A stretch of 63,935 nucleotides of DNA, counting the filler, from Klebsormidium nitens (taxonomy: Eukaryota > Plantae > Klebsormidiophyceae), in the NCBI GenBank assembly GCA_000708835.1. It is 7 parts of 7 records of this genome, joined end to end, with 100 filler letters (N's around TTAATTAATTAA, not from the genome) between each part and the next. Parts side by side here need not be neighbours in the genome. Positions count along the whole stretch, not along the records: positions 1 to 25,793 come from DF237131.1; 6 more parts are not named here. One strand, 5' to 3'. The translations under genes and the position numbers were made by a program. Shown piece by piece: positions 1 through 25,147 of the stretch. Below the pieces are notes generated by a model. The model had not been told where the DNA came from. It searched no databases and saw nothing but the letters and a program-made list of their open reading frames with translations. The first letter of the stretch is position 1, and the number at the start of each line of letters is the position of its first letter.

Positions 1-66
1 ATCATTTTTGTCCGGACCCCCGGCTTTCCCCCCGGGATAACCTTCATCAATTTCAAATTCATCAAA
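1..66 (-). repeat. One unit of the ~70-bp subterminal repeat, inverted relative to 13085-13410
   Basis: Reverse complement TTTGATGAATTTGAAATTGATGAAGGTTATCCCGGGGGGAAAGCC resembles GATGAAATTGAAAATGAAGAAGGTCTTCCCGGGAGGGAGACC at ~13160. Confidence 0.7.
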
Positions 67-94
67 GTTTCCGACCACGCATTTCTTGCACCCA

Positions 95-204
95 ACGCCT
101 ATACTTGAAGGTAGGGTCAATATATATATATATATATAAAGTCTAAGCGGCAACTCTTTGCTCTAGACGCCTATACTTGAAGGTAGGGTCAATATATATA
201 TATA
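95..204 (+). repeat. Direct repeat ending in (TA)n, upstream of the transposase
   Basis: ACGCCTATACTTGAAGGTAGGGTCAATATATATATA at 95 and 167. Confidence 0.85.
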
Positions 205-304
205 CATTTATATGTAAGGCCATTCTCATATACACTGGACGCCTTGAACAGTATATATATTTTTGAGACACTTTCTTTAGTAGAGGGTAGCACTGGCGCT
301 GCAC

Positions 305-380
305 TGGCCCGACTGGCCAGTGATTTCTAAAACCTTGCCAGAGCCCTTTTGGCGTCGTGGGTTCGATTCTCCGATCACCA
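305..380 (+). promoter_or_regulatory. tRNA-like A-box/B-box pair (possible Pol III type-2 promoter)
   Basis: TGGCCCGACTGGCC at 305, GGGTTCGATTC at 359, ending in CCA at 380. No full cloverleaf established. Confidence 0.3.
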
Positions 381-502
381 ACATCTTTTCCCCATTCCTC
401 TTTTCTTTTGCTCCAGACGCATGCACCTGAAACCCATGGCTCTCTAAATGCATTGTACTTTTCGGCATTGAGATATGCAGCACCTGGGCGGCGCTGGGAA
501 CC

Positions 503-3500
503 ATGGCTGCTCATGGGGAACGGACAGGAGAGGAGCAGAGGGCAGCGAGCAGCAGCATGAATGCATTGGCCTACCCGCTTTCGCTCCCAGCATTTGAGGT
601 ACTGCTGGAGTGCTTGAAGAGATACAAGCAGCCTTTTCCGGCGCGAGCGGAGGTGATCACGGACATTATCAATGCAATGCTGCCAGCAGAACAGCAGGTG
701 ACCAAGGTACAGGTTTTCAACGTGCTCGACAAGCTTAAGACACAAGAGCCCGTGTTCGCAGTCAGGCAGCATCTTGTGCAGCAGCGTACTGCAAGTGTGG
801 CCAGGGAGCAGGGCACTCTTTTCGTTGCCATGCCACAGCCCATCAAGTGTGTCCTGTGTACCGCAGATCTGAAGTGGGCGCCAGCGGTGACAAAGTCTTT
901 CTTTTACCCGCATGACGGCGCGCCGTCAAAAGGCCTTGTGTACAGCAAAGTCTGCTCCGCATGCAACACACTGTACTGGACATCTCACGTACTACTGCCC
1001 GCGTGGGAGCGATGTGAGACGGCCCTACACAAAGAGCGCAGACAATGCCAGCTGGCTCCAGCTCTTCGGGGACACCATCCTCAGCCGGGAGCTTCTCAAG
1101 AGGCACGACTACAACCTGTGAGTGCCTTTCTTTTTTGTATCTGATACTCCATCTACATTTCAGCCTTACCCGCGAGATCAACACTCGCCAAACATCCATC
1201 ACAAGCAGCATTTGAGGGCGGGTACAAGGATAGTGCAGGCTCTTAGATTCCTGGAGATGCTATTTTCAAACTCTGGGCGCATGCGGGGCAGGACCAAACA
1301 AACGCACGTCACAGGGCCTTTCTGTTTCCGCTGTGAAGAAAGACAGTTGGCACTCCCTGTACTGCTTTTCTAGCAGGTGCTGCGAACGTAAGTTTAACAA
1401 ACCCTAAACTCCTTCTCCAGGTACTACGCTCAGACCAGCTTCTCCGCTGCGGTCAACGTGCACAACGTGCTTTACGGTCTCCAGCGGTTCACGGAGGCAC
1501 CGGAACTGGGCCTCCAGCACAATCAACACCTGCGCACGCACAGGGGTGCGCTGTACGTGAAGCGCTTTGAAGAGGGCTACTTGCTCTCATGGGTGCTGCG
1601 ATTCTGCCAGGAGCTTTGCGAGAGCCAGCTGAGCGAGATTGATCTCCGGTGGCCGCTGGATGTCCTGATACACCGGGTGAGACCTCTTCCAGGCGTCACA
1701 CTGACACCTTTTGCTGACCCATCTTTCCTCTTCTTTCCAAGAAACAGCATTTGCCGCTTCCAGCAGTAACAGACAGACAGCCATCTCTTGGCCACCGTGT
1801 GTTCTTGTCAATACACCGGCCAACAGTGCCAATACTCAGCTCCAGTTCGCCCACGTAGTTTATTCGTTTTCGTTTTGGAAATGAGTTCGTGCAGAAGACA
1901 ATTCCACTCTCCTTGGCCAACTTTGCGACAGGCTCTGTGTTAGGTCGGGTTGAGCAGTCGCATTCTCTTCAGAACTCTGCTTTTGGGTTGTGTACACGTT
2001 TCAGCAGGTATGCCGAGCGCACTTCTTGTTCCTGCGAGAGGCCTCTGGCGCCAAAGGAAGATTGTACATCAGCAACGCATGGGGCTTCTCTCGTGAGCGG
2101 TCTCTTTATTCTGCCCCATCGTTTCATCTGCAGATAATCGACCCCTTCTGGTGCCAACTCAGAGATGAAGCCCTGGAGCACCCGAAGGTCTGCCGGAACG
2201 AGTTCTGCGGGCGGTACGCCCATGTGGACGGTAACTGCAAGGTTATCCGGAGCTGTTGCGCCCGCCGGGACGTGGAGATGTTCGAGACGGCAATCGGGCG
2301 AGTCGTGAAAGGCTGCCCCAAGACGCCGGCGCGAGGCAAACGCTTCTGCAAGGAGCATCTGCAAGAGGCAATACAGAAAGGGCAAGACGGGGATGCACTG
2401 CCACCCGAGGCCGGGGAGCCGGGTGATTCGGACGTTGATGACGGCGACAACGCCGCCGAGAGCGACGACGAGATAGTTTTTCTGGGGGAGGGCGATCAGG
2501 GGCGGGAGCAGGGGGGCGCCACCGGGGACGTGGCAGCCGCAGACGGAAAGACGGCGGGCCGGGCACGTGACAAGGGGAAGGGCAAGGCGCCCGAACCGGA
2601 CGGGCCGCAGCAACAAGAGTGGGAGGTCAACGAAGACGCACCGGTGGCGCTCCGCACCCGTGGGCGGGCACAGCTTGCAAGTTCCGGGGGGATCTGGGAA
2701 GCGGAGCGGATCGTGAAGAGCATGGTCAAAGGAGGGGTAAGCAGAGATCGCGTTTCCATGAGCAAATCAGCTTCTGAAGACACCCGATTTCAAGCTATGT
2801 CGGCCTCTACATCGATAGGAATTTTGAGACTTTATCTTTCTGCATCTGCATATGGAATCAGCCTCCGTCGGGGTTCTTTTCTCGTTGCACCGAGTTGAGT
2901 GGCGTCTCTCCGAGAAGCTGTCTGCGATGACGATGCTGACGAGAGGCATGCACTCCCTTGAGATTCTTTCTGCCTTCGTTTGGGGTTAGCACGCTAACGA
3001 GATCGGAAGCCTGGCGTACGAGGAACTCTGCACCCGAATCGGTCGAGACCGCCTACGTTTTGTGATTCTCCTTCTTGTCGCAAGCTCTATTTACTTGACT
3101 ACTGGACGGTTGTCCGAAGCCACAGCCATAGTACTTTGTCGAATGTGCACGCAAGGTTTTCTTTTATAAGGACTCTGAATTGTATCGCCCGGCTGCCACT
3201 TGATCGTAGGTAACGATCTACCTCGTCAAGTGGAAGGGATTCCCATCATCGGAGAACACGTGGGAGACCTATGCCGACGTCACCATCGGCGGCATGGGTC
3301 TCATGAACGAGTTCAAACGCCGCCAGCTCCCAGGTGCGCAAAGAAAGCATCATTCGAAAGTCCTCTGAGACCGCTTCTCGCACGTTCTGCTCCGTTTACT
3401 CGTGTCGCTTGCAAGGTACGGATCTGTTCTCCGCTGCCCGTCCAATCTCATGTCAGTTCGAAGGACATGCCATCAATCCGCAGACTCTTTCCGAGAAATG

Positions 3501-5210
3501 ATTGTTCTCTCCAACTTCTACAGACGACTTCTACACCCGCGACCGGCAGGACAAAGAAGAGGACCCAGCGGACGAGACGTCGCAGCCGCAGCAGAAGAAG
3601 AGGAGGATCACATCCTGCACGCCCCGGGTATCGGCTGACGGCAAGGGCCACACGGCGGGAACGGTCGTCATGTTCTGGTGTTGCGGTCACATGTTTCCCC
3701 CGCTGGAGATGATCCTGTCGGAGAGCACAACGTTGGTAAGTCGAGAAGAAGCACGTCCATCCACGGAAAGCATTCTGAAAAGAAGTGCCCACGGAATGAA
3801 CAAAGGAACGACCAGATTCATCTGAGAGAAGAAAAGAAAGCGCGTTTCTTTTCTGCCGCGTCGAGGCCGCCCGCGATGCCCAGAATACTTCGCTGAACTC
3901 CAAGTCGCACTGATCTTTCTCCCTTTGGGCGGCCGCGGGCGCGCAGCCGCGGCGCGCGGCGTCTTTTTCCGATTTATGAGGTCGCCTGGTTCCCAGCTTA
4001 CGGTAGCAGCAGACATGCAGCCACGGAAAGAGAAAGTAACCGCCGATGCCAAGTGAGGACCTTCGCAGCCGTATAACGCTCCGTTACAAGCCAAACTCAT
4101 CGACAAAACGGTCACCCATTTCACAAACCCGAAACTAAACCCGTACAGCATCCTTACAGGTTCATCACTACTTCATGGAGTGTTTCGACCGCGTGGAGGA
4201 CCTGCCCGAGTACGCGGGCATGGACGACATGTGCCATTGGGCACGCTTTGCCGCGAGCGGCGGCCGCCCGGACATGTGCGCCAAGACGAAGGCCTTCGTG
4301 GAGAAGGTGAAAAAGCTCGGTAGGTTATGTTTACTACAGCGCGAGACGATGTAGTACGTGTCGAGTCAAATTCTGATGGCCCTTTTTACCAAGTAACTAC
4401 ATATTCTGCCCGGCAAAACAGAATTTGGTCAGTCAGGGTTTCAGGGAGCGAGACTTCTGGAATCCGGTGACAGAGTGTGCATTCGAGAGCGGAAAGATAG
4501 GATGAATCTGATGTCAGCCAGCTAGGCGCTGACGTCAGCAGGGTCTGATGGTACTTTTTTACCGAGTAAATACATCTTCTGCCCGGCAAAACAGGATTTG
4601 GTCAGTCAGGGTTACATGGAGCGAGACTTCTGGAATCCGGTGACAGAGTGTGCGTTCGAGAGCGGAAAGATAGGATGAATCTGATGTCAGCCAGCTAGGC
4701 GCTGACGTCAGCAGGGTTTGAGCTATTTGAAAAGAGACACGTGGCAGGCTGCGGATACCGTAGTTTGCAAGGGGCTACGGATGCTCGACGTCCATGCATC
4801 GCGAGGCATACTAGTCAGTCAATATCTTTGCGGTTGAGTATTGTCTCATATCTCATCGTTCCGACATGTTTGTAGTCGACAAATTCCACTACTCGAAGAA
4901 CCACGTGGGGAAGTGGTGCAAGGAGAACGTGAGCCCGTTCCTGTATCCGGAGCTGGAGGGAGCTAACATGAGCGTCTGCGAGCAACGGTTTAAGTGGTTC
5001 GGCAAATACCGATGGCTAGCGAGGTACGTACAAATGAGAGCAGTGCGGGCGGCTGACGAGACATAATAAAAGCACTCGGTGCGCAGGTCGACGGACGCTT
5101 TTGTCATGATGCAGCGGCACGCATTGCGAGACAGAAATCATTTGCTTGTCAGGCGTGCAGCAATCTTTGCTCGCAATGACAGACATGAAACGAAATCTTT
5201 CCGGCCTTAA
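503..5210 (+). CDS. Spliced KDZ-type transposase: CxC5, CxC6, chromodomain, catalytic domain
   Basis: CxC5-like KCVLC...VCSACNTLY; CxC6-like HPKVCRNEFC..VDGNCK..CCA..GCPKTP..FCKEH; catalytic GHTAGTVVMFWCCGH..SESTTLV, GMDDMCH, VDKFH..H..C, NMSVCEQ. Phase-consistent exons 1421-1676, ..-2736, 3210-3333, 3524-3735, 4160-4319, 4876-5023, 5087-5210. One frame change near 990; splicing between 1677 and 2134 unresolved. Confidence 0.8.
4372..4717 (+). repeat. ~173-bp tandem duplication inside a transposase intron
   Basis: GCCCGGCAAAACAG..GAGCGAGACTTCTGGAATCCGGTGACAGAGTGTG..CTGACGTCAGCAGGGT occurs twice, back to back. Confidence 0.9.
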
Positions 5211-5419
5211 AAGTGACGTGCACAATTGTTTGCAGAAACATGAACCAGCGGCGCTTCCAGTTCCTGCTCCTGATACTGACCAAGCTGGATCACCTACAAC
5301 GGGACGCAGCAACCAATCGCCATCTCCAAGCTCTGCAAGCCGCGCACCCGGGGGGGAGGCAGCCAACCCTGGCCGGGTCAACGAAACGACAGGTGACTAT
5401 CCAAAGCTAACACACGCAA

Positions 5420-8233
5420 TCACTCCATGTCATTCTCCTCTCCTTCGTTATCGTCTTCGTCGTCTTCCATCTCGGCGTCCTCTATCACGTCGGTCAGCCT
5501 GCATCGAAAGGGGCAAAACGGTTCGATTCTTTGCCGCAGAAATAAGACAGGAACTTATCTGGAATGAAACTTCGCATGAGCTGTCGGACCGAATATTTAG
5601 AAGAGGTTTTCGTTGAACGAGCACGCTGAGCACACTCACCTTTCTACGACTTGCGATTCCCGGTTGTAGAAGTCCTTGAATTTAAGGCCCAGCTTGGTTA
5701 GCTTGTTCACGATCTCCACGTACGACTGGCTTCCTTCCTCTGGAATCTCCTTGAAGAACACTGGCTGCTTCTTCTTGAATGGGTATTTCTTGGCGCGTTT
5801 GCATGATCCGAAGCAGTGGGAGCCGCCGTCGTCCTCCGAGCTCAGAAAGCTGAAGAGCTCGTCAATCTGCTGGATCGAACCGTACTTCCTCTTTCTGCTC
5901 GCTTCTCCTCGGGCGATGGTCTTGGCGTCCTTGAAGTCGTCGAAGAGCTTCACAGCGCGCTTCTCCAGCACGCTCTGCACAGAAAATAGTGATCGAATTA
6001 ACTCGAGAGCGACGGTCCATCAATCAAAAGAAGTCCAGGTCGGACGAAGAACGCACAGTCCAAAGAGTCACTAGAGCAAAACAAAGGAGGAAAAGTCAGG
6101 CCATGTCACAATCTAGACTCACCAGGCTGAACTTGTCGTCGTCCTTTTGCTCCCAGCTCTTGTCGTCGCCATCTTCTTCGTAGGGATTTTGCCAGTCGAG
6201 AACCTTGCTGACGATCTTTGACACGACCGGGTCGTTCTCAAAGTGCACCCGTTGGCGGAGCAAAAGAAGGATGTAGCCCCAAGACGCAGCCACCGAGTTC
6301 TCTGAGATCTTGTACACGTTTCCGACGCTCAGGTTGCTGGGACAGTTTGGGTCGCAGATAGTCATGATTGCTTCGTACGCCCCCGCAATGGCGAGAGCGT
6401 CTCCTTTGGCTTTGGACAGGAACCCTGCAGGAAACATGGAGAAGTCGGTTATTCTCAAAATTGGCCTGCGTTTTTCTTTTTTCGATCTCCCTCTTTTGCA
6501 GACAGAATGCAACAGATCTAGTTTCTGGAACGACAGTTTTCTTCTTAATTATTGTTTTGGATACTCACCACCCTTCTCTCCCTGGTCCTGGTCGTACAGA
6601 GACTGCAGGACCGTTTGGATGCGGTCGTGTTCTTTTTCGAAGGCCAGCTCGGCGTCCCCGTCCAGAATCCAAGTCACCTTCCTGGCAGTGCCGTCTTCGT
6701 CGTGGGCGAGCTTGTATAGGCGGTAGAAGATCTTCAAACAATGAAAATGCATGCATCAGACTTCAATAAAGAGGATTACTACAGTCCGAAATTCTGCAGT
6801 TTGTCAGAACTCGACTCGTCAAATCGACTAGGCAGCAGGACACGACTACGCAGACCTACCTCTGTCAACCGGTTGTCGTCGTCCTTGATGGTGTTTTGCT
6901 CGTTCACAGGAATCCGCAGCGCGTCTGTACAAAGATCCAGACATACATTCAGGTCTTATTATTCTAATTTTTGATTTTAAAACAAAAATTTCCTCTCTTA
7001 AAAGCACGTGCCTTTTCTGTTCACAGAGCGAAGCGAGCGGAACCAGCAAGCAGAACAAGAAAATACTCATTTGAGTGCTTCGACCTCAAGAGCTTCCAGG
7101 GGTGAGTCTCGCAACCTTTTATTGTTAGTGTTCAAGTCACAGGAAGTTTGCTCGCTTTGTTTCGCATTTGGAATCTTAAAGGAACGCGTACTACCAGCAA
7201 ACTTACCAAATTTTGGATAGAGCTGCGGCAAGAAGCAGATGGTCCACCTGTTCATCAGGCCGTCGTTGGGAACTTTCTCGATTTCACGCGCGATCGGATC
7301 TGGCTGCGTGTATCCACAGACAACCAGATGCGTCAGTTCACAGCTCCTCTTGTCTTTTTCGCTGACCGTCTCTCGCGTCCACGCTCCTCCACCCCGAAGC
7401 TTTAGAGCCGTGATGCGGTCAGCGTTCCCCTTTTTGAAGCAGTCTAGTGATTCAAAGAACTGCATCCCTTCTTCCAGATTTAGAAGCCCCGAGTGGTCCT
7501 TGTTGCTCAGCAAGATGTTGAACAGCCTCTCAAACGTAACCTGCAGAATGAAAGATAAACGTTAATTGTGTGATCACATGAACGACTAAAAAGAATAAAG
7601 CCTTTGAAGTTCCATCTGCAGAGTATTTGATATTCTTTTTGTATCAGAATGACATCAACACGGAGTTCAGAATCTATTTTACAGAGCGACATGCTACTGT
7701 CCTGATCAGAGAGAATTTCGAAAACAGTCAAAGAGCACATGCGAGTTTCTTAGGCTTACCGCGCCATCAACTGCGACCTTTACGAATCCTGCATTGCGCA
7801 TCTCGTCTTCGTAGGCTTCAGTTCCTACTGGGACCTTGTTTTCTTCGAGGTAGCTGATCATCCTTTCCTTGACTTCGTCGTTAATCTGCTCTTCAAAAGA
7901 GGTCACCGCTTTCTGGACCTTGTTGTAGGCTTGTGTTTTGCCTCCACCGCTAGACGACACAGCAATGCTCCAGTTTAGAACTCTCGTCTTCCAGTCACAC
8001 GACGTGATCACCACCTCAGAAAGTGGCCCGAGGCAGTAGGTGGCCACAGACACCACCGGCAAACCCAAAGCCCAGGGGCTGACAGCAACCCTCCTCGCAC
8101 TTCTGCAGATAACGTCAGCGATGGACTCGGGAAACGAGGTCATGAAATTGTCCACTGTGAGGATCTCAGAAATAGCTCTGATGTTGCCAATAGCACAGGC
8201 AGGGTGTCCTCCATTGCTCCGTCTCTTTGCCAT
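5420..8233 (-). CDS. Spliced DUF3987/YfjI-like P-loop NTPase (putative helicase)
   Basis: Walker A region NWSIAVSSSGGGKTQAY; VTFERL..GLLNLEEG; LVVCGYTQPD..DGLMNRW; LSKAKGDALAIA. Exons include 8233-7760, 7540-7207 and 6924-6860 with GT-AG sites; acidic tail ends at TGA 5422-5420. Confidence 0.8.
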
Positions 8234-8961
8234 TTGGACGGCGATCTGATAGATTCAAGCCAATAGAACCTTTTGCTTTCTTTGATAATGTTCACGATCA
8301 GTCCAACAAAGCGCGAGTACACTTCTCCTGCTCGCAATCAAAATTGGCAGTCGTTCATCAAGAACTTTCAAAACCTACCGAAACGAAATGGCAGGCTGTT
8401 TTCCTGTGTGAGACTCTTTGCAAAGTATTGCTGCTGCGCACGAGTCAAGGTGCGCTCATATCTAAATGTTCGAAACTTGAGGAATGAGCTGACTATGTGA
8501 AGAATGAAATGTAAACTTGGATCGAGATCTAAATGATGCTTCAGATGCAAAAGTCTCACTACAGGAAAGCTATTATATAGGCCTCATGTGCATGACTTAA
8601 CATGAGTCTCAAGTCTTCACTCACTCAGTGTTCGTACATAGCATATGCTCAAGAACCGTTCGAGATCTAGTACATATTGTGACCAGCCTAGCTGGAAAAA
8701 TGCATGCAATCAATCTGCCACCGCATGGATCTCCGATCACGTCACAGTTTCTCACAGGAATATAAGCGATGATTTCTTGCTTCCTGATTGGTCGTCTGTC
8801 TATCTTGACAGCGACAGCCAATCAGATCGCACGGATCTAGAGCATGGAGTAGTTGATACAGATACCGTCCGATAAGGGCGGCGTCCTATCGGATGGTGCA
8901 CACGCTATACTGCGCGAATCCCTGGATGCAATTCAAAAAAAACGACAAAAAGTTGATCGAA

Positions 8962-9046
8962 AGTTGCCGTAACGAGGATTCGAACTCGGACCATGCAAAA
9001 GCCACTAGCTATGAAGGTGGCGCGTGAGTTTGACCAGTTTGGCCAA
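8962..9046 (-). promoter_or_regulatory. tRNA-like A-box/B-box pair pointing toward the DUF3987 gene
   Basis: On the minus strand TGGCCAAACTGGTCAA is followed by GAGTTCGAATCC. Confidence 0.35.
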
Positions 9047-9171
9047 CCCACGCGTCAACAGCGAACCGTGGCCTTCCAAATGTGCTCCTTCAAAAATTTA
9101 TATATTGATTTAAAAGCAGTGACCGATCGGCGGCCGGTAGCGCGACAAACCTTTTGCCGCGCGCGGCCGGC

Positions 9172-9246
9172 TGGCCAAGATGGCTAGTGTAGTCAGCCAA
9201 TGACGGACACAAAAGTTGGGGCTTTTGTTCGAGCCCCGCTATCCCC
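9172..9246 (+). promoter_or_regulatory. Weaker A-box/B-box pair pointing toward the PrimPol gene
   Basis: TGGCCAAGATGG at 9172, GTTCGAGCCCC at 9227. Confidence 0.25.
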
Positions 9247-9547
9247 ACCGCCAACCGGTCTCTCACGCATTTGCGTCTAAGGAATCATCATCTTTGTTTT
9301 TTTTTTCCACCCCTTTTCCAACTTCACACAATTCTCGTACCTAGGCTCCATTCGCAATCATGAGGATGAAAGCAGGCGTCACTATACCATAATATACATG
9401 TTCAACCTTACACTATACTTGTACTCCTAATTGGTCATACAGTGTTCAGTTTCCTAGACCTGACCGCATTCAATTGAAAAGACCAGGTCATTCAAAGTTC
9501 CCAGCCGATAGATACTTCTGCTCATCAATGCACATTCCAGTGTAACC

Positions 9548-12500
9548 ATGTTCGAAAGCCTCAAAAAGCGCCTCCGTCGGGAAACAGGTGCCTACGAACC
9601 ACCGTCATTTGAGTTGATTCCTGAACCCCAGGAGGTTTTGAGAGATTTTGTAAAACAGGATGAGGCGCTGGCATTTGCTAGATCGTGTTCTAGCTGCTAC
9701 GATAACCAGCTGTACATCTTCGCCAAGGAGAACCCCGAGACTGGCGGTCGTACATTCTTTGTCTCAACATTCAGCAATTTCTTCACTAGGTAGGATCAGC
9801 ACACGTCCGTTAAGAGCCTGTCCACTGTTTGAGCAAAAAAAATAGTGGATTCGCTTTCTGAACTCACGTGTCCTCAAGCCTACCATCCTACTAAGCGAAG
9901 CAGAGTCTTGCTAACAGCTCCCTGCTGCTTCCCTTCCGTGCAGGTGGAGCAGTCATAAACTCCCTGGAGAGCGTCACTTTTACGAGGTCATCTACGACGT
10001 AAGGAGCCAAATTCTCCACGACTAGGTTCTATAAGCTGAACTCTTCAGGACTATCGAGGTCCCTTGGAAAAAGTTGCATGGCCTGCACCGCCGTTTCTGC
10101 AAGGAGATGACATTTTTGAAACATTAATCAATCGAAACTGTTTGTCTTGCAGAAATGCAACCTGTTTGTAGACATCGACGGAGATAGATCAGCTCTACCA
10201 TCCCTGCTTGAAGTGGAGGAAGGGATTGAACAATCTATACAATTAGTAGACCAGCTCGCACATCACGTCTTCAGGGCCCACCTGGACTGGGGTCGAGTGG
10301 TAGAAATGGACGCGTCGAACTCCGGTGAGCAGCGTCTTTGGCGTCTTTGCTCAAGGAACTAGGACCTGGCCGGATGACAACTTGCAAGAAACGAAGAACT
10401 CGATCACAAGCTGTATCTGTATTCAACCCGAAAATCTTGCCCCACTCTGATTTTCAATTCCTCGTTTGCCTTGCAGTGAAGTTTTCGAGGCACTTGGTGC
10501 TTCCCTTCTTCAACCACCACTTCACAGACACTAAACAGGCCGGCAGGTTCATCTCGCAGGCAAGCGCAGCATCTGTAATGTGCGGCGCTCTCTGGAAAAA
10601 GATACATATCGATCAAAACGCGACATGCTCTTCTTTCTACTTTGACACCGATTGTCTAGACGAATGGTGCCCTGTCATTCGTTATTTTTTAACAGGAAGA
10701 TGGAAAGTGGAGCTCCTTTAGAGATTCCGTACGATCACACACCTCACTGACGCAGGTTTGCCAAGAGCTTACCAAACGAACGCAAAACGGTGACAAGAGA
10801 TACCTTCCGCTAGTCAAGACGTGGACGGAGCAAGGCGAGGCGCTGCTGCTGATCGATCAAGCCGTGTATACAAAAAACCGGCAATTCAGGACTTTCGGAT
10901 CGACAAAATTCAGAAGCACCAACGACCTCAAGCTCACGAACAGATACTACGAGACCAAGGTGGGTGAGGTCACAGATTATATGTCGGAAAAAGAACAAAT
11001 CTCTGTAATCAAACACATTCAATGGGCTCAGCTGACAGATCGAACAGATGAAGTCCAGTAATTCGCCTTGTAATTTTCTTACTTGAACGCGACGTTCTCA
11101 TCTCGCTCTCAGGGACCCAAAGAGGACCTGAGACACAGTCTCGTAGGAAACGTACCTAGGTCCAGCAAAGAACTGACGGCGCACACGCAGGTAAGCATTT
11201 GGCGACGTTACTTTTTCTTGTCATCGACTGCGCCAAAAGCAAAACCACGAGATGTATTGGAGTATTATGCTTCGGTTTGCTCATCAATCTGGTGGCACCA
11301 CTGCAAACGCTCCCCTATCTTCTGCAGATCCCACCGCCATCACGGAAGCTGAATGATACAAAACCTGAGACAGAAACGCAGAGTCTGTACATCCCGTTCA
11401 GAGATGAGGCCCTAGAACAATACCTGAAGAGCTGCACTCGTTCCCTCTGTACAGACGAAAACGGTGAGGACCGCGTGCACATCCGTGCATGTTTTCAACT
11501 GTGGACCTGCACAGTCGGACAGGTTGACGGAGAGCCGCAGGATAGAATAGTGATAAAAAATAGAAAACCCAACCGTTTCCTGGCGCCGATTCTGGCGTCC
11601 TTTTTCCGTCCACTATGCAGCGAGCATCCAGTCAGGCAAGCTGTACTCCCATAACTACGTCATCTACAACATCACAGATAGCACATTCTGCCCCGTCAAA
11701 AAGGGCGAGCACAAAAAGCACTCCGGTGAGATGTCATGAAAGCAATTTTGTTCTGTTTTTTTCTCTTTTCTTCGATTCTAATCTTAGCTTTTATCCTTCC
11801 CGCTAAACATGGACATAAGATTCAAGTTTAGGCGTATACAAATTCACGCGGAAGCAGGATGTCAGACGCCCGTTTTGAATTCTGTGCAGCGTACTGGGTG
11901 GTGGATACGGCAGACTCGTGTACATATTTGAAGTGCCACGATGTGGCGGATTGCGAAGGTGAGTTCCACGTTATCACATCCGTAGACAGCTAGAATGATC
12001 CGTCAAACGTCACGAGACTTTATATGAAGTTTCCTTAATGAAAGAAGGCGCGCTCGCATACAAAGTCGCGCTCACATACAAATCTGACTGCATACATACA
12101 AAATCAGATGACGCCTTTTTTCCTCTCCGTTTCGCAGGGAGAAAGTCTACAATCAAGCCTTTGCCCAAGCACCTAGCGCTCAAGCTCAAGACTACCGTGT
12201 CCGAAATTTTGCAGATACAGGAAATGCTGTCGCAGGTACGAATAATATTGTATGTCCAGTTTCTTTAGCCTTCGACCGTAAGGCCGCTGTGACTTTGCTT
12301 CTCTCGCTACTTCTGTAACCAAAAGTCTGTGTCCTGTACATTAGCACGACCAACAGGATATTAAGTACGACTCTTTGTAAGCTGACCATCCGCGTCCTCC
12401 ACGTGACAGGACGACACGATTGCACTCTTCGACAACGAGACGACCGTTCTTGGCGAATCAGCTTGCTCTCCACCCTTCCCCCACGAAACGACCCCGCCCC

Positions 12501-12952
12501 AGCCGCCCTCGAACGCGCCCTCCCCTGCAGCGAGCAGCGCGCGCGAGGCAGAGCCGGGCGCTAGCGGGAACGAGCAGCTGGACGCGCCGAGCGAGAGAGG
12601 CGCCGGTCTCGCTTCAGCATCCAGCCCATCGCCCCAGAAAACGAACCCGCCCCAGCCGCCCGTCCCGAAAGCGCCCTCCCCTGCAGCGAGCAGCGCGCGC
12701 GAGGAAGCGCCGGGCACTAGCGGGAACGAGCAGCTGGACGCGCCGAGCGAGAGCGCCACCGCCCCTGAACCTCCCTTGATTGCACCCCCTCCAGCAGCGA
12801 GCAAAGAGACAAGTACGCCCAAGTCTTTGCCCCCGAAAAAAAGACCGTTGACTGCAGACGCACAGCGCAGATACATCGAAGACGTAGTACAAGATACAAA
12901 AGACCAGACGCCAGATGAGGACATCAGTGGATACATCTTTTACTGGTTGTGA
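9548..12952 (+). CDS. PRIMPOL: Spliced eukaryotic-type primase-polymerase (PrimPol/CCDC111 family AEP with UL52-like Zn finger)
   Basis: Joined exons read HFYEVIYD|KCNLFVDID (motif I), VKFSRHLVLP (motif II) and LIDQAVYTKNRQFRTFGSTK (motif III), then FCPVKKGEHKKH..YWVVD..LKCHDVADC. Exons 9548-9789, 9944-9998, 10153-10324, 10477-10559, 10756-... The last-exon boundary is less certain. Confidence 0.88.
12480..12760 (+). repeat. Coding tandem duplication in the Pro/Ala-rich tail of PrimPol
   Basis: PPQPP..APSPAASSARE..PG.SGNEQLDAPSE encoded twice, ~156 bp apart. Confidence 0.8.
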
Positions 12953-13084
12953 AAGACAAACGTAGGCAATAAACTCATAGTACACGGACTATATGGAAGC
13001 ATGTGTTTAGTCTCTTCTTAACAACCAATAGTAATCGGATGTCCAAACATGTGTGCTTTGAAGATGCATCTTGCCAAGTCTTTT

Positions 13085-13410
13085 TTTGATGAATTTGAAT
13101 TTGAAGAAAGCTCTCACAGGGGAGAGATGCGCAGCCCCAAATTTTACAAGGCAAAAAATGATGAAATTGAAAATGAAGAAGGTCTTCCCGGGAGGGAGAC
13201 CTGTCTGCTGACGTGGCATGTTGAAAAATGATGAATTTGAATTTGAAGAATCCCTATCTAGGAGAGAGCCGGGGGGTGCTGACGTGGCATACCATTTTGA
13301 AGAATTTGAATTTGAAGAATGTAGTCGAAAGGAAAGGATAGGTTCGATGACGTCATCAAGATTGATGAAAAGTGAATTTGATGAAACATCGTCTCATGCT
13401 TCATTCAAAG
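13085..13410 (+). repeat. ~70-bp tandem array (4-5 units) at the right end of the element
   Basis: GATGAATTTGAATTTGAAGAA or a variant at 13088, 13160, 13230, 13299 and ~13365; CTGACGTGGCA in two units. Confidence 0.85.
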
Positions 13411-13835
13411 TATAAAATGAATGAATTGAATGCTGTCCTGGTCTTCACAACGATACATTCATTCTAAGAATCGGGTTAATAAAAAAGAAGGGTTAATAGG
13501 GAGTAACCGAACCCGGTTTTCAAATTGAAAAATCTAAATGAATGAAGGCTAAAATGAACCTTCAACTTGTAATCCTTCCCCCTTCATTGCCACCTTCTGC
13601 CCCATGTGCTTTGTGTGCACCTCTGCATCCATGTGTGCTGTCTCTAGCTGATTTCCAACACGCACTCATTCGCTGCGGCATTCCTTGCGCGTGGCACCGG
13701 GACATGAGGTGAATACTCCGACGTTGGGTTTGCCGGATCGTGTACATTTCCACATATGAGTGTACATCGCTCAATATTTCTAGTTGATTGGACGAGGATT
13801 CGTGTACACACACACACATCGAACACCACTAACAG

Positions 13836-14214
13836 GTGGCGAAAGCAGAAACCCTCCAACAATTCATTCAGCACTTCACGGGCTCTACTATGAGTGGCGG
13901 CATGGACCAAGAGCAAGCCTTGGAGTCACTATGCTACTGAGCTCTTTGCTCCTCTCAACGACCAACGCTTCAAGACCGGCATGGACGCTCGAAAGTCTGG
14001 TGGCATGGCGTGGAGGGCTTGGTTGGACGAAGAGTATGCACTCATTGACAAATACTTTGAATATCAATTGGAACTTGAAGAGTACAAAAGAGAATCCGAG
14101 CGTGTGAGCCGAGAGCTCGAGCAAGCACGAGTAAGATGGATTGATGTACATCTGGAACGTAGGTTCAAAAGCTCAAAGGCATTCAAGCGACACGTAGATC
14201 GGGATATCGATTAA
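13836..14214 (+). pseudogene. ORF-A, unknown function, frameshifted
   Basis: AETLQQFIQHFTG, then a frameshift, then YATELFAPLNDQRFK..GGMAWRAWL..RWIDVHLERRFKSS. Homologous to 27367-27754. Follows an AG acceptor at 13835. Confidence 0.7.
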
Positions 14215-14267
14215 AGAGTCTTGGTCATTGACTGGCAACTTTTATCAAACGTACTCTAGGCCTTGGA

Positions 14268-14810
14268 ATGGACGCGATTCTTGAATTTCGACCACAATCC
14301 TTGTTTGCTATCCAGCAGATGGACGGACAAGTTTTGGAAAGTGCTCGATCAGCCATTGTAAGATGCTATCGAGAGTTTGGTTTATTGGAGACCGTGCTGG
14401 ACGCGGCTGCCTTGGGTGGTATCCGAGCTCTGGTAGAACCGTTCAATCTTCGTCACATCACCAAATCACTGGTTAGATCGTTGGTTGCGGATGGCTTTAA
14501 TGCATTTTGGGACAAGACGGGCATAGACGGCCCATATGCAATAAAGGTTAGCTGGCGAACGGCCCTTCACAATGCTTCTCAAGCTCGGCACCGAACACGC
14601 AAGTCGCAGAAGCGGCAAGAAAGTAAATTGCACGGGACGGGGAAGACGTCTCCGACAAGTTGCAAGGATTTTGTGGCCGGAACTTCGGGATCCTCCCGTT
14701 ATGCTCCCAGCGTTGTTTGGAGTGATGCCCCAGTTATGGAACTCGAAGCTCTGGCTAACCCCGCAAAGATGCAGAAAAATGTTGGACCGCGAGATACTGC
14801 GGCAACTTGA
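14268..14810 (+). CDS. ORF-B, unknown function
   Basis: MDAIL..MD..VLES.R.AIVR.Y..PF.LRHI..SW..AL..AS.AR shared with 27796-28296. Confidence 0.8.
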   Translation: MDAILEFRPQSLFAIQQMDGQVLESARSAIVRCYREFGLLETVLDAAALGGIRALVEPFNLRHITKSLVRSLVADGFNAFWDKTGIDGPYAIKVSWRTALHNASQARHRTRKSQKRQESKLHGTGKTSPTSCKDFVAGTSGSSRYAPSVVWSDAPVMELEALANPAKMQKNVGPRDTAAT

Positions 14811-15091
14811 TACCGAAACTACCTCAAAAGTACCCGTTGACGAAAAATGGACGGCCATATTCACAGTATCTGGCTCAGTGTATTTTGCGCGCAAAATGGA
14901 GTAGCCATCTTGCTTTTCTGGCGGGTTCTACAGGCTCTCATAACCGTTTTCACCGTGAAAAGCTGCTACCCATCTTGAATTCGCGCGATCAATTTTGAAC
15001 GTGGTCCTTCATGGTATCTGGGATTGAGGACGTTCGGATGGTCAAAAAAATCTTAGCAGTATCCAGATAACGTGAAACATGCAAGGGCCTG

Positions 15092-16117
15092 TTGAAAGCA
15101 CGAGACCAAGGGGAAGGGCTACTGCGCTTGGTATTCGATGATGGCACTCGAAAGGATTTGACGATTCAACAATATATCAATCATGTCATGCGCTTGTTTC
15201 AAGGGTTCAAACGGCAACAAGACTTTATCAGCTTCGATTGGATCAAGGATGCCGATGGGATCATCAAGTATTTTCAAGAAGCGTATCCCACAAAGCTATC
15301 AATGCAGGCCACTGGAATTAACCCGCTCCTTGTGATAGCGCGCAAAGCATTCCCCGATGACAAACAGCTCTATGATGCCTATTACAAGCGGTACATGGAG
15401 GTTCGAAAGCTTATGGAAGATGCGAAACCTCCTCCTCAGCAGTTGACAGAGCGGGAAGCGGCCAATTGGAAGACCTTGGGCCAGATCAATGAACGCCGAA
15501 AGGAGCTGCAAAGGCACGTGAATCGCAAGATTCTACACAAGAAACCAAAAGATTTGACCGATGAGGACAAAATTGTGCTTTTTTGCCATCTCATACTGTG
15601 CCTTTATAGCTATCAACCAGCAATCCGAAATGACTACAGCGATTGTCCCGTTGTGCGCTTGAAGGACACCAAAACGGCCGAGGCTCGTGACATCATGTCT
15701 GGTTCCGGGAACTATCTCTTGGAGATTGCACAAGACCAATTTCGACTGGTTTTGAACAATTATAAGTCTGTCAAGCACCACGGACCCACTTCAATAGACA
15801 TGTCAACCCGATGCAACAATGTCATTGCCGAAAGCCTTCAGGTCTTTCCCCGAAAGTTTCTTTTGTCTCAGATTAAGTCGCCTGACAAGCCAATGAGTCG
15901 AAACTATCTGACCAAGTTCTGCAGCACGGGCCTTTTCAAGGACGCGAGTGTAGGTTCATGTCTCCTTCGCAAAATATGTGTAAGCAACCTCTTCAAAGAC
16001 GCTCCGAGCATTGCCGAGCGCGACGACCTTGCGCGGAGCATGTTGCACACGGCAGCTATGGCACAACGAACCTACGAGAAAAAGTTTAACCCGGATGGAA
16101 GCCGCATCCAATTTTGA
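15092..16117 (+). CDS. Tyrosine recombinase of the polinton-like virus/NCLDV type
   Basis: Catalytic set: PAIRNDY (R), YKSVKHHG (K), CLLRKI (R), MLHT (H), TYEK (Y). Start codon uncertain. Confidence 0.85.
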   Translation: MKARDQGEGLLRLVFDDGTRKDLTIQQYINHVMRLFQGFKRQQDFISFDWIKDADGIIKYFQEAYPTKLSMQATGINPLLVIARKAFPDDKQLYDAYYKRYMEVRKLMEDAKPPPQQLTEREAANWKTLGQINERRKELQRHVNRKILHKKPKDLTDEDKIVLFCHLILCLYSYQPAIRNDYSDCPVVRLKDTKTAEARDIMSGSGNYLLEIAQDQFRLVLNNYKSVKHHGPTSIDMSTRCNNVIAESLQVFPRKFLLSQIKSPDKPMSRNYLTKFCSTGLFKDASVGSCLLRKICVSNLFKDAPSIAERDDLARSMLHTAAMAQRTYEKKFNPDGSRIQF

Positions 16118-16141
16118 ACGATCCTGGACCTTCCTGTCCAT

Positions 16142-16543
16142 CTAAGATACTTTGATGCTCGTGAATGCATCCAGAGGAAGGGTGGGTGCTTTGATCTCAC
16201 TCTCCATATCAATAGAGCTAGTCATCTGGGGCACCTTAAATCCGGCATCCAACAGACGTCGTGCTGTAGATTTGTGGAGCTTTTTCGTTCGGCCATTTAT
16301 GAATCTTTGATATGCTTTTCGTAACAGAATCTCGTCATGATGTCTGTAATAGTATGCCCTCACACTTGCGTTGTGCTTTTCTGGGTGAATCTTGGCATAT
16401 TCTCTGTGTTTTTGACACGCTCGACACGGGCACGGGTTGTGCAATTGTGTTGCATCAGAGGCATCAAAGAAGCTTTCATTCATGTGGTGGACCATTGAGT
16501 CCTGATGATGTGTGAGATTATATTTGCGATGCTTCAACCGCAA
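16142..16543 (-). CDS. Small basic protein with C-x-C-x2-C motif
   Basis: CPCRACQKHREY..HPEKHN..V.AYY..ILL.KAY.RF..G.TKKLHK.T, homologous to 29796-30020. Confidence 0.75.
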   Translation of the reverse strand: MRLKHRKYNLTHHQDSMVHHMNESFFDASDATQLHNPCPCRACQKHREYAKIHPEKHNASVRAYYYRHHDEILLRKAYQRFINGRTKKLHKSTARRLLDAGFKVPQMTSSIDMESEIKAPTLPLDAFTSIKVS

Positions 16544-16605
16544 CCCAATTCAGGTGCGTTTCTCTGACGTGCTTTTATTTCCTTGTGTGACACAAGGACC
16601 TTGGC

Positions 16606-19528
16606 ATGTCTGCATCTGTGAGTGGCGCTCAACAAGCTGGCGGCTCTCGGGCCTCGGCCCCAGGATATTTCAAAGCTCTAGGCCCTCATGATGTCGATGA
16701 GCGGCTTGTGCTTGTTACCCAAGATGGCCGACTTCATGTGTCTGCAGAGAATGCTCCGATTCAGCCTCATAACAAGCAAAAATATTGGTTGGTAGATGCG
16801 ATGCGAGCTTTATACAAGCAAGGCATGTACACGGTCCCTCTACGGCTTCAGATGATCAGGGGCAAGAAGGATGCAAGCTTCAGCGGCGGCGCCTACACGC
16901 CCTTGATGGAGTCGTTGGATGGTTGGAAAGAGAATATCAATGCATACATTGCTCGGGCTTCAACAAAAGTGAATGCTTTGGCTGTACTATGCGGCATATC
17001 CGACATCTATGTCGTAGACGTAGACGCAAAGGGAGCTCCGGCCCAAGGGAATAAGCCTGCCAAAGAGGCTGGAACACAGCTCTGGGAGCGCTTGATAGAG
17101 CAGTATGGTGATGTTGAGACGTTGAAGGCTCGGACCGGATCAGGAGCGGGATTGCATGTGTATTTTAGCGCAAGTAAAATAGTTGGTCTGGTGAAGAATG
17201 CCAACTTCTCAGGTGTTGCATATGATAAGAAGACATGGGCCATCGATGGCCGTGGGCAAGACGGGATTGCTTTCATCTCTCCATCCAAGTACTACGATGA
17301 GAAAAGGACGGAGTACGGCTACCATTGGCTTGATGGTGACGAATCAGCACCTCGTGTTGGGATGCCGAGCTGGTTGGTTAGCTTTCTTAACGAGAGCGCA
17401 TTCACAGAAGAGCCACATGCTAAACTCCAATCGTCAAAGGCTTTGCCAACGCCTAGCATTGAAGCAAGCGCGCCCTCAAGCATTGTAGGGGGTCCTTCCG
17501 ACTCCGGATTGCCTGGATTGGACGCCGCGCTCAAGAGAATCAAGAAGCTCCTCCAAGCTAAAGCGCCAGGGGATCGGAGTCGATTCAGGGGAGTTGGGAA
17601 AAGAACCGCAACGGGCTGGCAAATTCTCAAGTTTAGAACGGTCGGCGTTCGTACATGTTTGAACGGTCACCAACACGACGCAAATCAGTTCAGCATCCTG
17701 AGCAACGGGTGCGTTCTCGTCTACCGCTGCTTGAGCCCTGGGTGCATTGATCGAACAAAGCCCCTGTTAGGCATACATTTTTGGCCCGAGTGTCTGCCGC
17801 TGAGGGTGGACGGGGGGCTTTTCAGAGATTACGAACGCTATGTGCTCCCTTTTGAGCCACCCAAAGAAGATGGCGACAAGACGAAGAAACAAAAGGAAGA
17901 TGACCGCACAAAAAAGACGAAATTGGACTTGCTGGATCTCGCAATGCACATCATGAACCACTACTTCGCTGTCATTCGCTCGACAAAGGCAATATACCTT
18001 GAGACAGTTTACTTGCAAAACTCAAACGGCCAGCTTCTGCCGGAGGAGATCATCGTTCGATCTATCTCGATCGATCTCGATCGATCTCGATCGCCGTGAC
18101 TTCCTCGAAGTATGCAAAAATCTCCAGCTTCAGTGTCTGCCGGGAAACTGCAAGGAGGTTGCCAGATTTTGGGAGAGCAGTTCAAAACGCCGGGAATACG
18201 ATCAGCTAGTGTTCGAGCCGGACCCGTCCAAAATGTCCTCACGGCACTTCAACCTGTTCAACGGGTTGAAGTTCCAACCAATTGAACGCAAATTGACGGA
18301 GTCAGAGTTCGTAGAGTGCGGGGAACACATGCCAAAGCTCATGTGGCACCTCCGCAACATCTTGTGCGATGGCTCAAGTGAGCGGTTTGACTACATCATC
18401 CGTTGGATGGCGCATGCCGTTCAAAAACCTTGGAAGAAGATAGGCGTTGCCCTAGTATTTCGAGGCGGGCAAGGGAGCGGAAAGTCGTCGTTGTGGAAAT
18501 TCTTTGGACGCATGATCCTCGGCGTCAAGTATTATCTTTACTGCAACCAGATTGAAACGGTGATTGGCAAATTCAATTCACTAGGAGCCAACAAACTTCT
18601 TATTGTCTTTGACGAGGCGGGCAATTGGGGTGGAGCATTTCGAATGAACGATCGAATGAAGTCGCTAATCACTGAGGACGAGACATGTTTAGAGCACAAA
18701 GGCCGCGATCCAATCACAATGCAGGACAAGAGCAACATTGTGTTCACTACAAACAACTATTGGCCTGTGAAACGGGATTCGGATGATCGCCGATATGCTT
18801 GCCAGCAGTGCTCGAATGCCAAGATGGGAGACAAGCCATACTTTGATGCACTCTTGGCAGAATTGGAGAAACCTGAGACTCCTTATCACCTCCATCGATA
18901 TTTGTCATCCATTGACATTTCCCACTGGGATCCCCAAAAAGTGCCGGTCACGGCTTGGGGAGAGGGTTTGAAGGAGCACTCAATCCCACCTCATGTCAAT
19001 ATGATGCAAGCGCTTCTTGAGAACGGCTGCTTCCATCCTTCTTTGGAGACGTGGGTTGCATCAACCGACATCAAGCGGACATTTGACACCTTCTTGCTTC
19101 AATTGGATATCAAGGAGGATCGACATACCGATGTCAACATCTTGATGCGCTCTCTCAACTCCATTTTCGATATGAGGCCACGGGCTCGCTCAATCCAGGG
19201 GGTGCGGACCCATAAGGGATGGTGGTTCCCCCCACAGGGCGCTATTTGCGAGGCCCTCCACAAAGGCAAGCTTCTGAGCACGACCGTGGAATGGGTGGAC
19301 ACCTGGCAACGGCACGAATACACTGAAGATGAAGAGGGGCCGTGGATGACCAATCCAGAAGCTTTCAAAAAGCTGATTGCCAGTGATCCAAAAGAGTTGC
19401 GGCAATCTGCTGCAGCACAAAAGTGCTCGTTCTGCTTAAACATTCATCAGTGGGAGGTGAGGAGAGACGCAAATGGGAATGTTGTGACTCGAGAAAGAAC
19501 AAGAGATGATTCTTCTGAAGGCAATTGA
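16606..19528 (+). pseudogene. Prim-Pol domain + Zn-binding domain + SF3 helicase (DUF5906-like), frameshifted by a 10-bp duplication
   Basis: LAVLCG..YVVDVD, RTGSGAGLHVYF, IDGRG; RTCLNGHQH..YRCLSPGC; WMAHAVQKPWKKIGVALVFRGGQGSGKS, LIVFDE, VFTTNN, DDRRY. Deleting one TCGATCTCGA unit at ~18071-18090 fuses the two ORFs into ~970 aa. Confidence 0.85.
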
Positions 19529-19539
19529 GTACGAATCAG

Positions 19540-20290: not shown

Positions 20291-20294
20291 CTAA

Positions 20295-24909: not shown

Positions 24910-25147
24910 CCTGGGATAGGAGAGAAAGCTGTGACTTTTGAGCAGTTTTCGTTGGCCCTAAGTGCTGCGGCAACCCCGAAAATCGGGCTCATTGTGCCGT
25001 GACACAAAGTTGCACGTCATGTGGCCCAATGGCCGTTTGACGTTGGTCCACACCTTGCGAACGGTCACTTTTCAGCAGAAAGCCCAATTCCTAATAACCA
25101 TCAATTGGCAATGTGTGGTCCATCAGGACTGAAGCTGCTGCCCACCC

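Follow-up and report, generated by a model that had tools for sequence, protein, structure and literature searches.

Can a cut-and-paste DNA transposon of a eukaryote carry its own machinery for starting replication? The question is raised by the first 13,410 nucleotides of the window, a 63,935-nucleotide stretch from the green alga Klebsormidium nitens (assembly GCA_000708835.1; positions 1 to 25,793 come from DF237131.1), which hold three intron-containing genes: gene A on the + strand, gene B on the - strand and gene C on the + strand. The original prediction had read this segment as a self-synthesizing KDZ transposon that combines a transposase, a PrimPol and a DUF3987 helicase-like gene. 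We found that inverted subterminal repeat arrays surround three conserved genes in a fixed arrangement, and that these form a unit. This unit is real and is probably a new transposon variant carrying a replication module. We found no paper on the combination of transposase, PrimPol and DUF3987, in agreement with the suggestion that the architecture had not been described.

Organization and ends of the element

The main features of the segment are as follows.

1..66, no strand: left subterminal repeat array, partial, with one full unit and the tail of another
86..244, no strand: second-tier tandem repeat, 72 nt x 2.1, between the left array and gene A (TRF and repeat search)
~503..5410, + strand: gene A, Cys-rich DDE-like transposase candidate with embedded chromodomain (collinear with relatives by tblastx)
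5636..8233, - strand: gene B, DUF3987 P-loop ATPase, candidate replicative-type (SF6/MCM-like) helicase (Pfam and orthologues)
8234..9547, no strand: intergenic region between genes B and C, presumed from the gene positions only to be a shared promoter region
9548..12265, + strand: gene C, intron-containing PrimPol, AEP of eukaryotic PrimPol/UL52 type, 3' end uncertain
12407..12949, + strand: Pro/Ser-rich open frame, gene C tail or non-coding, including a 153-156-nt duplication (12479-12761)
13082..13320, no strand: right subterminal repeat array, 4 units at ~70 nt spacing, inverted relative to 1-66

Gene A converges on gene B, and genes B and C are divergent, as predicted for DUF3987 (-) and PrimPol (+). 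The Pro/Ser-rich frame has no Pfam match and no homology in relatives. A Pfam scan detected no polymerase domain in any ORF of 1-13410, the sole enzyme of this kind being the primase-polymerase. A second, unrelated phage-like primase-helicase lies about 3 kb from the element in the same stretch.

The 22-nt core motif TGATGAATTTGAATTTGAAGAA, counted with up to 3 mismatches, occurs four times on the + strand at 13087-13319 and once on the - strand at 43-64, with 0 occurrences expected by chance in 100 shuffles. The left and right arrays match each other in inverted orientation over 38 nt at 82% and over 22 nt at 91%. Of the predicted enclosure by repeat arrays, the inverted TGATGAATTTGAATTTGAAGAA arrays on both sides stand, but the left one is cut by the start of the stretch: it comprises about 1.3 units only, and the left end of the element lies outside. 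The right terminus is placed somewhere past 13320. We lean towards reading positions 1 to about 13400 as one copy of a large DNA transposon of a low-copy family, its extreme left end missing.

Part of this layout would also suit an integrated plasmid-like or virus-like replicon, in which the arrays would be origin repeats and gene A an integrase or chromatin tether. Direct repeats of ~70 to 120 nt in arrays recall those of replication origins, episomes typically encode a primase-helicase pair, and the phage-like primase-helicase nearby suggests that the region collects such elements. We nevertheless regard a replicon origin as quite improbable: virus genes, for capsid, packaging or other functions, are missing from the three-gene unit, introns of host type occur in all three genes, and gene A retains a hint of a KDZ-associated Cys cluster along with its three invariant acidic motifs. 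The inverted arrays at both ends, with the terminal inverted repeat of the related locus L002, are arranged as are the subterminal transposase-binding sites of transposons.

Gene A, a candidate transposase

Under the transposon reading, gene A would supply the recombinase. The following features were located in it.

~503-1124, + strand: N-terminal Cys-cluster exons
1679..2134, + strand: lineage-specific intron, GTGAGA...CAG, boundaries read
2221-2241, + strand: first acidic motif, H-DGN-K
3210-3365, + strand: chromodomain PF00385 (E 4e-9)
4220-4237, + strand: second acidic motif, MDDMCH
4372..4721, no strand: 173-nt tandem duplication in an intron (TRF and repeat search)
4869-5033, + strand: H(4)H..C..CEQRF exon; the last gene A exon ends at 5410

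By tblastx, the exon blocks of gene A are collinear with those of L002-L006, L009 and L010, which include chromodomain-containing K. nitens genes and metagenome contigs. All three acidic motifs, with H(4)H..C before the last one, are invariant across the intact copies. The exons that flank the intron at 1679..2134 form one continuous exon in K. nitens copies, and L006 is gapped at the same position. The intron holding the 173-nt duplication varies in length, the gap between its flanking exons ranging from ~170 to 935 nt in relatives.

The + strand given for the predicted KDZ transposase stands, but the KDZ label itself is weakly supported. The KDZ transposase model PF18758 matched no exon ORF in the stretch or in five relatives even at E <= 10, in a search of separate exons that could miss a weak full-length match. 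The CxC5 family (PF18718) was matched by 3 of 34 exon ORFs, all below the cut-off of 26.9 bits (best E 0.0087), and is the sole Pfam family matched repeatedly across gene A copies. Gene A matches no curated transposase model and no CACTA-type Pfam family, and the precomputed Pfam annotation of its K. nitens relatives lists Chromo alone, or none. A PDB search with a profile of the last catalytic exon returned no RAG1 or Transib chain, and the C(2)C motif was not recognised in the placeable gene A exons.

The DUF3987 ATPase and PrimPol genes

Exon 1 of gene B alone scores 22.7 bits (E 6.5e-5) against DUF3987 (PF13148), below the Pfam cut-off of 27; two K. nitens orthologues, P0005 (54.5 bits) and P0009 (72.3 bits), lie above it, and residues 1-553 of the 562 of P0005 align to gene B. 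No PriCT domain was detected. The Walker A motif of the ATPase was located as follows.

7934-7957, - strand: Walker A, SSSGGGKT

The GGGK[TS] of Walker A is conserved in the DUF3987 copies. The Walker B region has an invariant glutamate, preceded by E in gene B and P0001 and by D in most relatives. In a search with the AF2 model of P0009 (pLDDT 76.5), the 50 best PDB matches listed were all MCM subunits, with a best E of 4.9e-5 and TM-scores of 0.27-0.37 only. The DUF3987 protein models as an MCM-like fold, and its role as a helicase is predicted.

Gene B has introns at 7759..7541 (GTAAGC..CAG) and 6122..5973 (GTGAGT..AG). GT..AG boundaries were found at the gene junctions examined, except for two in gene B, one ambiguous and one without candidates given the anchors used. 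The prediction of three fully spliced genes holds for their presence, their strands and the introns at the junctions examined, these two gene B junctions apart.

For gene C, human PrimPol (5L2X, 7JK1) was the sole PDB match, at E 0.005 with a single exon and 9.5e-7 with a four-copy profile. Its main elements are these.

10120-10359, + strand: motif I exon, from the exon translation; motif I is DID, against DLE or DFE in relatives
10479-10499, + strand: motif II, KFSRHLV
10855-10890, + strand: motif III, DQAVYTKNRQFR
11557-11990, + strand: Cys/His-rich exons, conserved with L001

By its sequence, gene C is a PrimPol in which catalytic motifs I (DxD/E), II (SxH) and III are recognisable. It is collinear with the PrimPol genes of L001, L002, L004 and L010; motifs II and III were both located in the studied copy, L001 and L002, motif III in L004 and motif II in L010. 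For the L004 orthologue the precomputed annotation shows a weak Herpes_UL52 match, and the studied copy has no curated match for a C-terminal zinc finger.

Related loci

A search for further three-gene copies, which the prediction had called for, found the full trio in identical order and orientation in two K. nitens loci (L002, L004) and one algal metagenome contig (L010). Flanking genes differ by locus (zf-CDGSH; SNF2 and porphobilinogen deaminase; S28e and Rieske), and no DNA similarity between loci was seen beyond the conserved exons of the three genes. This supports the proposal that the three genes travel as one bounded unit. Partial or decayed forms keep a transposase-DUF3987 pair (L003, L005, L006/L007, L009) or a PrimPol-DUF3987 pair (L001/L008). 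The spacer between genes B and C is 1.3 kb in the studied copy, against ~7 kb in L001/L008, where other DNA intervenes. In L003 and L005 the transposase gene is broken and the PrimPol motifs are absent, which fits decaying transposon copies.

Inverted subterminal arrays, with copy-specific units, also occur in both L002 and L004. In L002, a 33-nt candidate terminal inverted repeat lies immediately outside the arrays, and the candidate termini begin AAGTACC. Upstream of its transposase gene, L006 has two-tier repeats (4 x 90 nt, then 3 x 95 nt) like those of the studied copy. On their PrimPol side, neither L008 nor L010 showed arrays. Neither single-copy, syntenic PrimPol and DUF3987 genes without the transposase nor terminal arrays independent of the three genes, both of which were looked for, were found.

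The copies are old, with 30-70% amino-acid identity, and their DNA similarity (~65-88%) is restricted to conserved exon segments; conservation covers the exons but not the introns, whose positions are in part common to the copies. Cut-and-paste mobility, which the prediction had assumed, was not supported. There is no target-site duplication at the sole candidate terminus pair, that of L002 (the right end of L004 falls in an assembly gap), and no near-identical, recent copies or empty sites were found among the loci compared.

Few and very divergent copies, with no target-site duplications or recent copies, are also what a non-mobile host gene cluster would give, as an old duplicated family of three linked genes with incidental repeats. 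This is very improbable in our view. Flanks are unrelated at the different loci, two copies are decayed, every complete copy is bounded by inverted arrays of its own, and almost no sequenced genome contains the family (24 proteins at E <= 0.001 among 1.84 billion cluster representatives). A conserved host function would not be expected to show such rarity, decay and unrelated flanks. These loci rather likely represent a rare family of large (13-17 kb) DNA transposons, known so far from Klebsormidium-type green algae.

Proposed mechanism and significance

We consider it fairly likely that this transposon has its own replication-initiating pair, working by the mechanism that we infer here. The transposase would recognise the repeated units near both ends and cut and join the element, and the embedded chromodomain probably directs it to chromatin of a particular kind. 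PrimPol and the DUF3987 SF6 helicase would constitute a primase-helicase pair, like the replication machinery of bacterial and archaeal mobile elements. This pair would open and prime the element DNA for copying by host polymerases, whether on an excised intermediate or in the course of gap repair, and a cut-and-paste element would gain copies in this way. The term "self-synthesizing" goes further than the data: a primase-polymerase and a helicase are present, without a processive polymerase or any sign of element replication.

More tentatively, and less probably than not, the family may be a separate class of eukaryotic self-replicating transposons, in which an extrachromosomal intermediate would be copied by the element's own PrimPol and SF6 helicase after KDZ-like excision, the arrays acting as both transposase sites and origins. 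Such a class would be a transposon-replicon hybrid that joins a eukaryotic repair primase to a helicase family otherwise from bacterial and phage elements.

The same transposon could instead carry PrimPol and DUF3987 as passengers that serve damage tolerance or the filling of donor and target gaps, and not replication, much as TET/JBP genes are carried by KDZ transposons of fungi, and by others, to the transposon's advantage. DNA transposons are well known to carry accessory enzymes (PMC12730594), the bacterial element-encoded PrimPol of PMC11724360 also acts in repair, the PrimPol described here is of the eukaryotic repair type, its only PDB match being the human enzyme, and the element lacks a processive polymerase. 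We judge this unlikely. Across copies only 30-70% identical, an SF6/MCM-like helicase of the replicative type stays strictly paired with the primase, the two genes being divergent; primase-helicase pairing is the signature of a prokaryotic replication-initiation module and so counts against the passenger role. Repair-only cargo would need no dedicated helicase.

To our knowledge, eukaryotic transposons with a DNA-synthesis enzyme of their own use protein-primed B-family polymerases, DDE transposons with accessory enzymes carry dioxygenases, nucleases or helicases, and DUF3987 helicases have so far been a bacterial and phage family. The joint retention of a primase-polymerase and a replicative-type helicase over deep divergence suggests that a replication-initiation module can be acquired by cut-and-paste elements. 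Such an acquisition, like that of many prokaryotic elements, would blur the line between transposon and episomal replicon in eukaryotes, add a mobile-element branch to the eukaryotic PrimPol family and put DUF3987 helicases into a eukaryotic nuclear genome. The chromodomain of the transposase is a lead on how DNA transposons might select their chromatin targets.

Comparison with known systems

Polintons/Mavericks, casposons and pipolins are, like the studied element, mobile and bring their own DNA-synthesis enzyme. Theirs is a family B DNA polymerase, accompanied by an rve integrase, Cas1 or a tyrosine recombinase, whereas the element has no polymerase B: it encodes a primase-polymerase together with an SF6 helicase, and its recombinase differs from theirs. 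AcademH, a eukaryotic DDE transposon, likewise encodes a helicase besides its transposase (Kojima 2020, cited in PMC10045372). Its transposase belongs to a different superfamily and its helicase is, so far as is known, of another kind. AcademH occurs in animals and fungi and is not known to carry a primase.

KDZ (Kyakuja-Dileera-Zisupton) elements, which carry TET/JBP genes in fungi (PMC12730594) and of which Kyakuja and Zisupton are reported in Chlamydomonas relatives (PMC8226300), are likewise large DNA transposons with a Cys-cluster transposase and an accessory enzyme gene; CxC5, a KDZ-associated domain, is matched by gene A below threshold. The studied element differs in a catalytic region without a KDZ model match, in an embedded chromodomain and in a cargo of primase and helicase, not dioxygenase. 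Target duplications are 7 bp for Kyakuja and 8 bp for Zisupton and Dileera (PMC12730594), and the 7-8 bp duplications of Kyakuja/Zisupton are not seen at the candidate ends of L002. With CACTA/EnSpm and the wider CMC(T) group (CACTA/EnSpm-Mirage-Chapaev-Transib), the element shares inverted subterminal arrays and the invariant H(4)H; the CMC signature includes such a motif, placed after the second acidic motif and before the final glutamate (PMC12730594). In contrast to that group, the candidate termini of L002, the single copy examined for this, are not CAC...GTG and have no short (2-5 bp) duplication.

Adjacent PrimPol and DUF3987 ATPase genes also occur in bacterial integrative elements such as that of AgaPP/AgaPH, in which the PriCT-DUF3987 protein is a 5'-3' helicase that binds the adjacent element-encoded PrimPol; DUF3987 has been assigned to helicase superfamily 6, and the authors proposed the pair as the replication machinery of the element (PMC11724360). 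That element is prokaryotic, integrase-based and intron-less, with a PrimPol of a bacterial AEP family, whereas the one studied here, with no PriCT detected, joins its DUF3987 ATPase to a PrimPol of the eukaryotic PrimPol/UL52 type and to a DDE-like recombinase.

Genes of the element

The three genes at window positions 1-13410 form a bounded unit of conserved gene content and order, which is dispersed at unrelated sites and is also represented by decaying copies. The piece that carries the element (positions 1 to 25,793, from DF237131.1) is eukaryotic DNA with intron-split genes, interrupted by a single assembly gap at 19786-19862. The exon-sized open frames within 1-13410 are accounted for by a DDE-like transposase (gene A), a DUF3987 ATPase (gene B) and a PrimPol (gene C), A and B being convergent and B and C divergent.

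Features of the element (window positions)
about 503-5410, + strand: gene A, with an N-terminal Cys-rich region, acidic motifs and a chromodomain
2221-2241, + strand: first acidic motif of gene A, H-DGN-K
3210-3365, + strand: chromodomain of gene A (PF00385, E 4e-9)
4220-4237, + strand: second acidic motif of gene A, MDDMCH
4869-5033, + strand: exon of gene A with H(4)H..C..CEQRF
5636-8233, - strand: gene B, its first exon giving a sub-threshold DUF3987 match (E 6.5e-5, 22.7 bits vs a cut-off of 27)
7934-7957, - strand: Walker A motif of gene B
from 9548, + strand: gene C, with AEP primase motifs

No break was seen in any of the conserved exon blocks of the window, and GT..AG introns were present at the junctions examined (gene A, 1679-2134; gene B, 7759..7541 and 6122..5973); among the gene B junctions, one was ambiguous and another had no candidates given the anchors used. 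Scans of the window for tRNAs and Rfam families returned no matches. The stretch at 290-375, which contains GGTTCGATTC, has a tRNA T-arm-like look, and neither ARAGORN nor Rfam matched it.

Copies at other loci

Only 24 of 1.84 billion cluster representatives matched a profile built from DUF3987 exon 2 at E <= 0.001, and 11 did so at E <= 1e-10. The named proteins among these are three, all from the charophyte alga Klebsormidium nitens, and a fourth K. nitens locus was reached with a transposase exon profile. All four loci (L002-L005) have a chromodomain gene convergent with a DUF3987 gene and are collinear at the protein level with window 548-8243; L002 and L004 additionally carry a divergent PrimPol that is far more diverged in sequence, the one in L004 with a weak match to Herpes_UL52. 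Further copies come from metagenome contigs of two JGI samples.

Copies on metagenome contigs
L010: full trio of genes
L006 and L007: transposase and DUF3987, nearest to the window
L001 and L008: PrimPol and DUF3987
L009: distant copy, truncated

Two of the K. nitens copies are decayed, and PrimPol motifs were found in neither: L003 has at least one in-frame stop in the transposase gene, and L005 shows one or more breaks in its last catalytic exon. At L001 2200-9300 (equivalent to L008 1300-8400), PrimPol and DUF3987 lie about 7 kb apart, vs 1.3 kb in the window, separated by ORFs of no relation to them plus a tandem repeat of 165 nt; this material is probably a nested insertion.

Neighbouring genes vary by locus (zf-CDGSH; SNF2 and porphobilinogen deaminase; ribosomal S28e and Rieske), and DNA similarity between loci, of about 65-88% identity, is confined to the conserved exon segments. 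Because the flanks differ and only exon segments are similar, the loci are neither segmental duplicates nor syntenic orthologues. As a reading of the conserved gene order at such differing sites, a static host gene cluster is highly improbable. The original prediction had named two observations that would speak against a transposon, namely single-copy PrimPol and DUF3987 genes syntenic in relatives without the transposase, and arrays occurring independently of the trio; we found neither, and on this point the prediction stands.

Subterminal repeat arrays

A 22-nt core occurs in four + strand copies at 13087-13319, spaced about 70 nt, and in one - strand copy at 43-64; none is expected by chance (100 shuffles). 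Since the piece starts within the left array, the left terminus of the element falls outside it. Inverted arrays also enclose copies at two other K. nitens loci.

Arrays and repeats at other loci (locus positions)
L004, 5311-5872 and 17781-18300: inverted arrays
L002, 3924-4802 and 19334-20330: inverted arrays
L002, 3694-3726 and 20376-20408: inverted repeat of 33 nt (85%), directly outside the arrays

L004 meets an assembly gap at its right end, and the candidate ends of L002 are not flanked by a target-site duplication. L003 has an array on the transposase side only, L006 resembles the window in carrying a two-tier array 5' of its transposase gene, and the PrimPol side of L008 and L010 showed no arrays. 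With inverted arrays at both ends, and an inverted repeat outside those of L002, an integrated episome instead of a transposon seems quite improbable to us. The repeat units of the arrays are not the same from copy to copy, which would be expected under co-evolution of the transposase of each lineage with its putative binding sites. We propose that the DDE-like enzyme would bind these subterminal units and move the element.

In metagenome contigs, the 22-nt motif gave 36 single matches; these contigs have nothing else in common with the window, and the matches were rejected as further copies and taken as chance. Adjoining a K. nitens copy, L005 7024-8098 holds two inverted blocks of 21-nt tandem units about 830 nt apart, an arrangement that resembles a small non-autonomous element bearing arrays near its ends.

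Identity of the transposase

Single exons of gene A retrieved no transposase family from Pfam, PHROGs or PDB. One Pfam family alone was matched more than once, the CxC5 cluster that is associated with KDZ (sub-threshold in 3 of 34 ORFs, best E 0.0087), and the KDZ transposase model was unmatched by any exon of any copy; no curated model confirmed the KDZ label of the original prediction. Basidiomycetes are the typical hosts of KDZ elements; a fungal origin was rejected, all named relatives coming from K. nitens. The H(4)H motif ahead of the last acidic residue also belongs to the CMC signature (PMC12730594). The only retrievable transposase protein, P0028, is a mis-spliced partial annotation whose AlphaFold model (mean pLDDT 47.7) is too poor for a fold search. 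No family assignment was reached for the DDE-like gene A.

An acidic linker follows the first acidic motif, and the chromodomain comes after it, ahead of the second acidic motif; the domain is conserved in the K. nitens copies, Chromo being listed for their gene products. Chromodomains are known in LTR-retrotransposon integrases, and we know of no case inside a DDE transposase core. In the element, this domain probably biases the choice of chromatin.

The PrimPol and DUF3987 pair

Human PrimPol was the only PDB match of the gene C motif III exon (E 0.005), and this match improved to 9.5e-7 with a four-copy profile. A word-based homologue search with a PrimPol exon and a metagenome scan with a DUF3987 exon profile returned no matches. 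The K. nitens orthologues of gene B exceed the Pfam DUF3987 cut-off (54.5 and 72.3 bits), and the alignment of one of them, P0005, to gene B spans residues 1-553 of 562. For another, P0009, the AlphaFold model (pLDDT 76.5, pTM 0.75) gave MCM helicase subunits as all 50 best PDB matches listed (best E 4.9e-5), with modest TM-scores of 0.27-0.37. DUF3987 has been assigned to helicase superfamily 6, and a bacterial protein of the PriCT-DUF3987 type acts as a 5'-3' helicase and binds its adjacently encoded PrimPol (PMC11724360); the MCM-like model fits this published role. The pair would most likely start copying of the element DNA by host polymerases. That PrimPol and DUF3987 are instead repair cargo of the transposon we consider rather unlikely.

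Neighbouring region

A second primase-helicase, in long intron-less frames unrelated to the element's pair, lies at window 16591-19525 (+ strand). In it a Prim-Pol (PF09250, E 1e-9) precedes a DUF5906/VapE-like SF3 helicase (E 6e-20), and its reading frame is split in two pieces, the cause being a single frame change or else an intron that escaped recognition. Both pieces match the phage 'DNA primase' phrog_1156, and PDB 6K9C/6K9E 'Primase' is matched at E 2e-10; IMG/VR yielded no relative. Paralogy with the PrimPol-DUF3987 pair was rejected, there being no tblastn match. Together with two upstream ORFs (14232-14807 and 15071-16114, both without matches), it may form a separate element at 13480-20300. 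At 19539-20297 there are arrays of TATTACCC-type 8-mers and longer repeats, spaced roughly 245-550 nt and interrupted by the assembly gap, with a weak inverted match at 13482-13501.

Open reading frames beyond these repeats
20298-22415, - strand: ORF of 706 aa, GC-rich, intron-less
22915-24957, - strand: ORF of 681 aa, GC-rich, intron-less

Both ORFs (GC 62-64%) are unmatched in Pfam, PHROGs and PDB. Units of about 120 nt, every one containing a palindrome (GTGTACCAG...CTGGTACAC), form an array at 25137-25793 that reaches the piece end.

Comparison with known systems

In the literature searched, whose coverage is incomplete and does not extend to Repbase, we found no account of any eukaryotic DDE transposon, whether KDZ, CACTA-like or other, that carries a primase or PrimPol, and no paper pairing either enzyme with Kyakuja or with a eukaryotic DNA transposon of this type. 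The near precedents are KDZ elements, which carry TET/JBP; AcademH elements, which carry a helicase; self-synthesizing transposons, which carry polymerase B; and bacterial elements with PrimPol-DUF3987 (PMC11724360).
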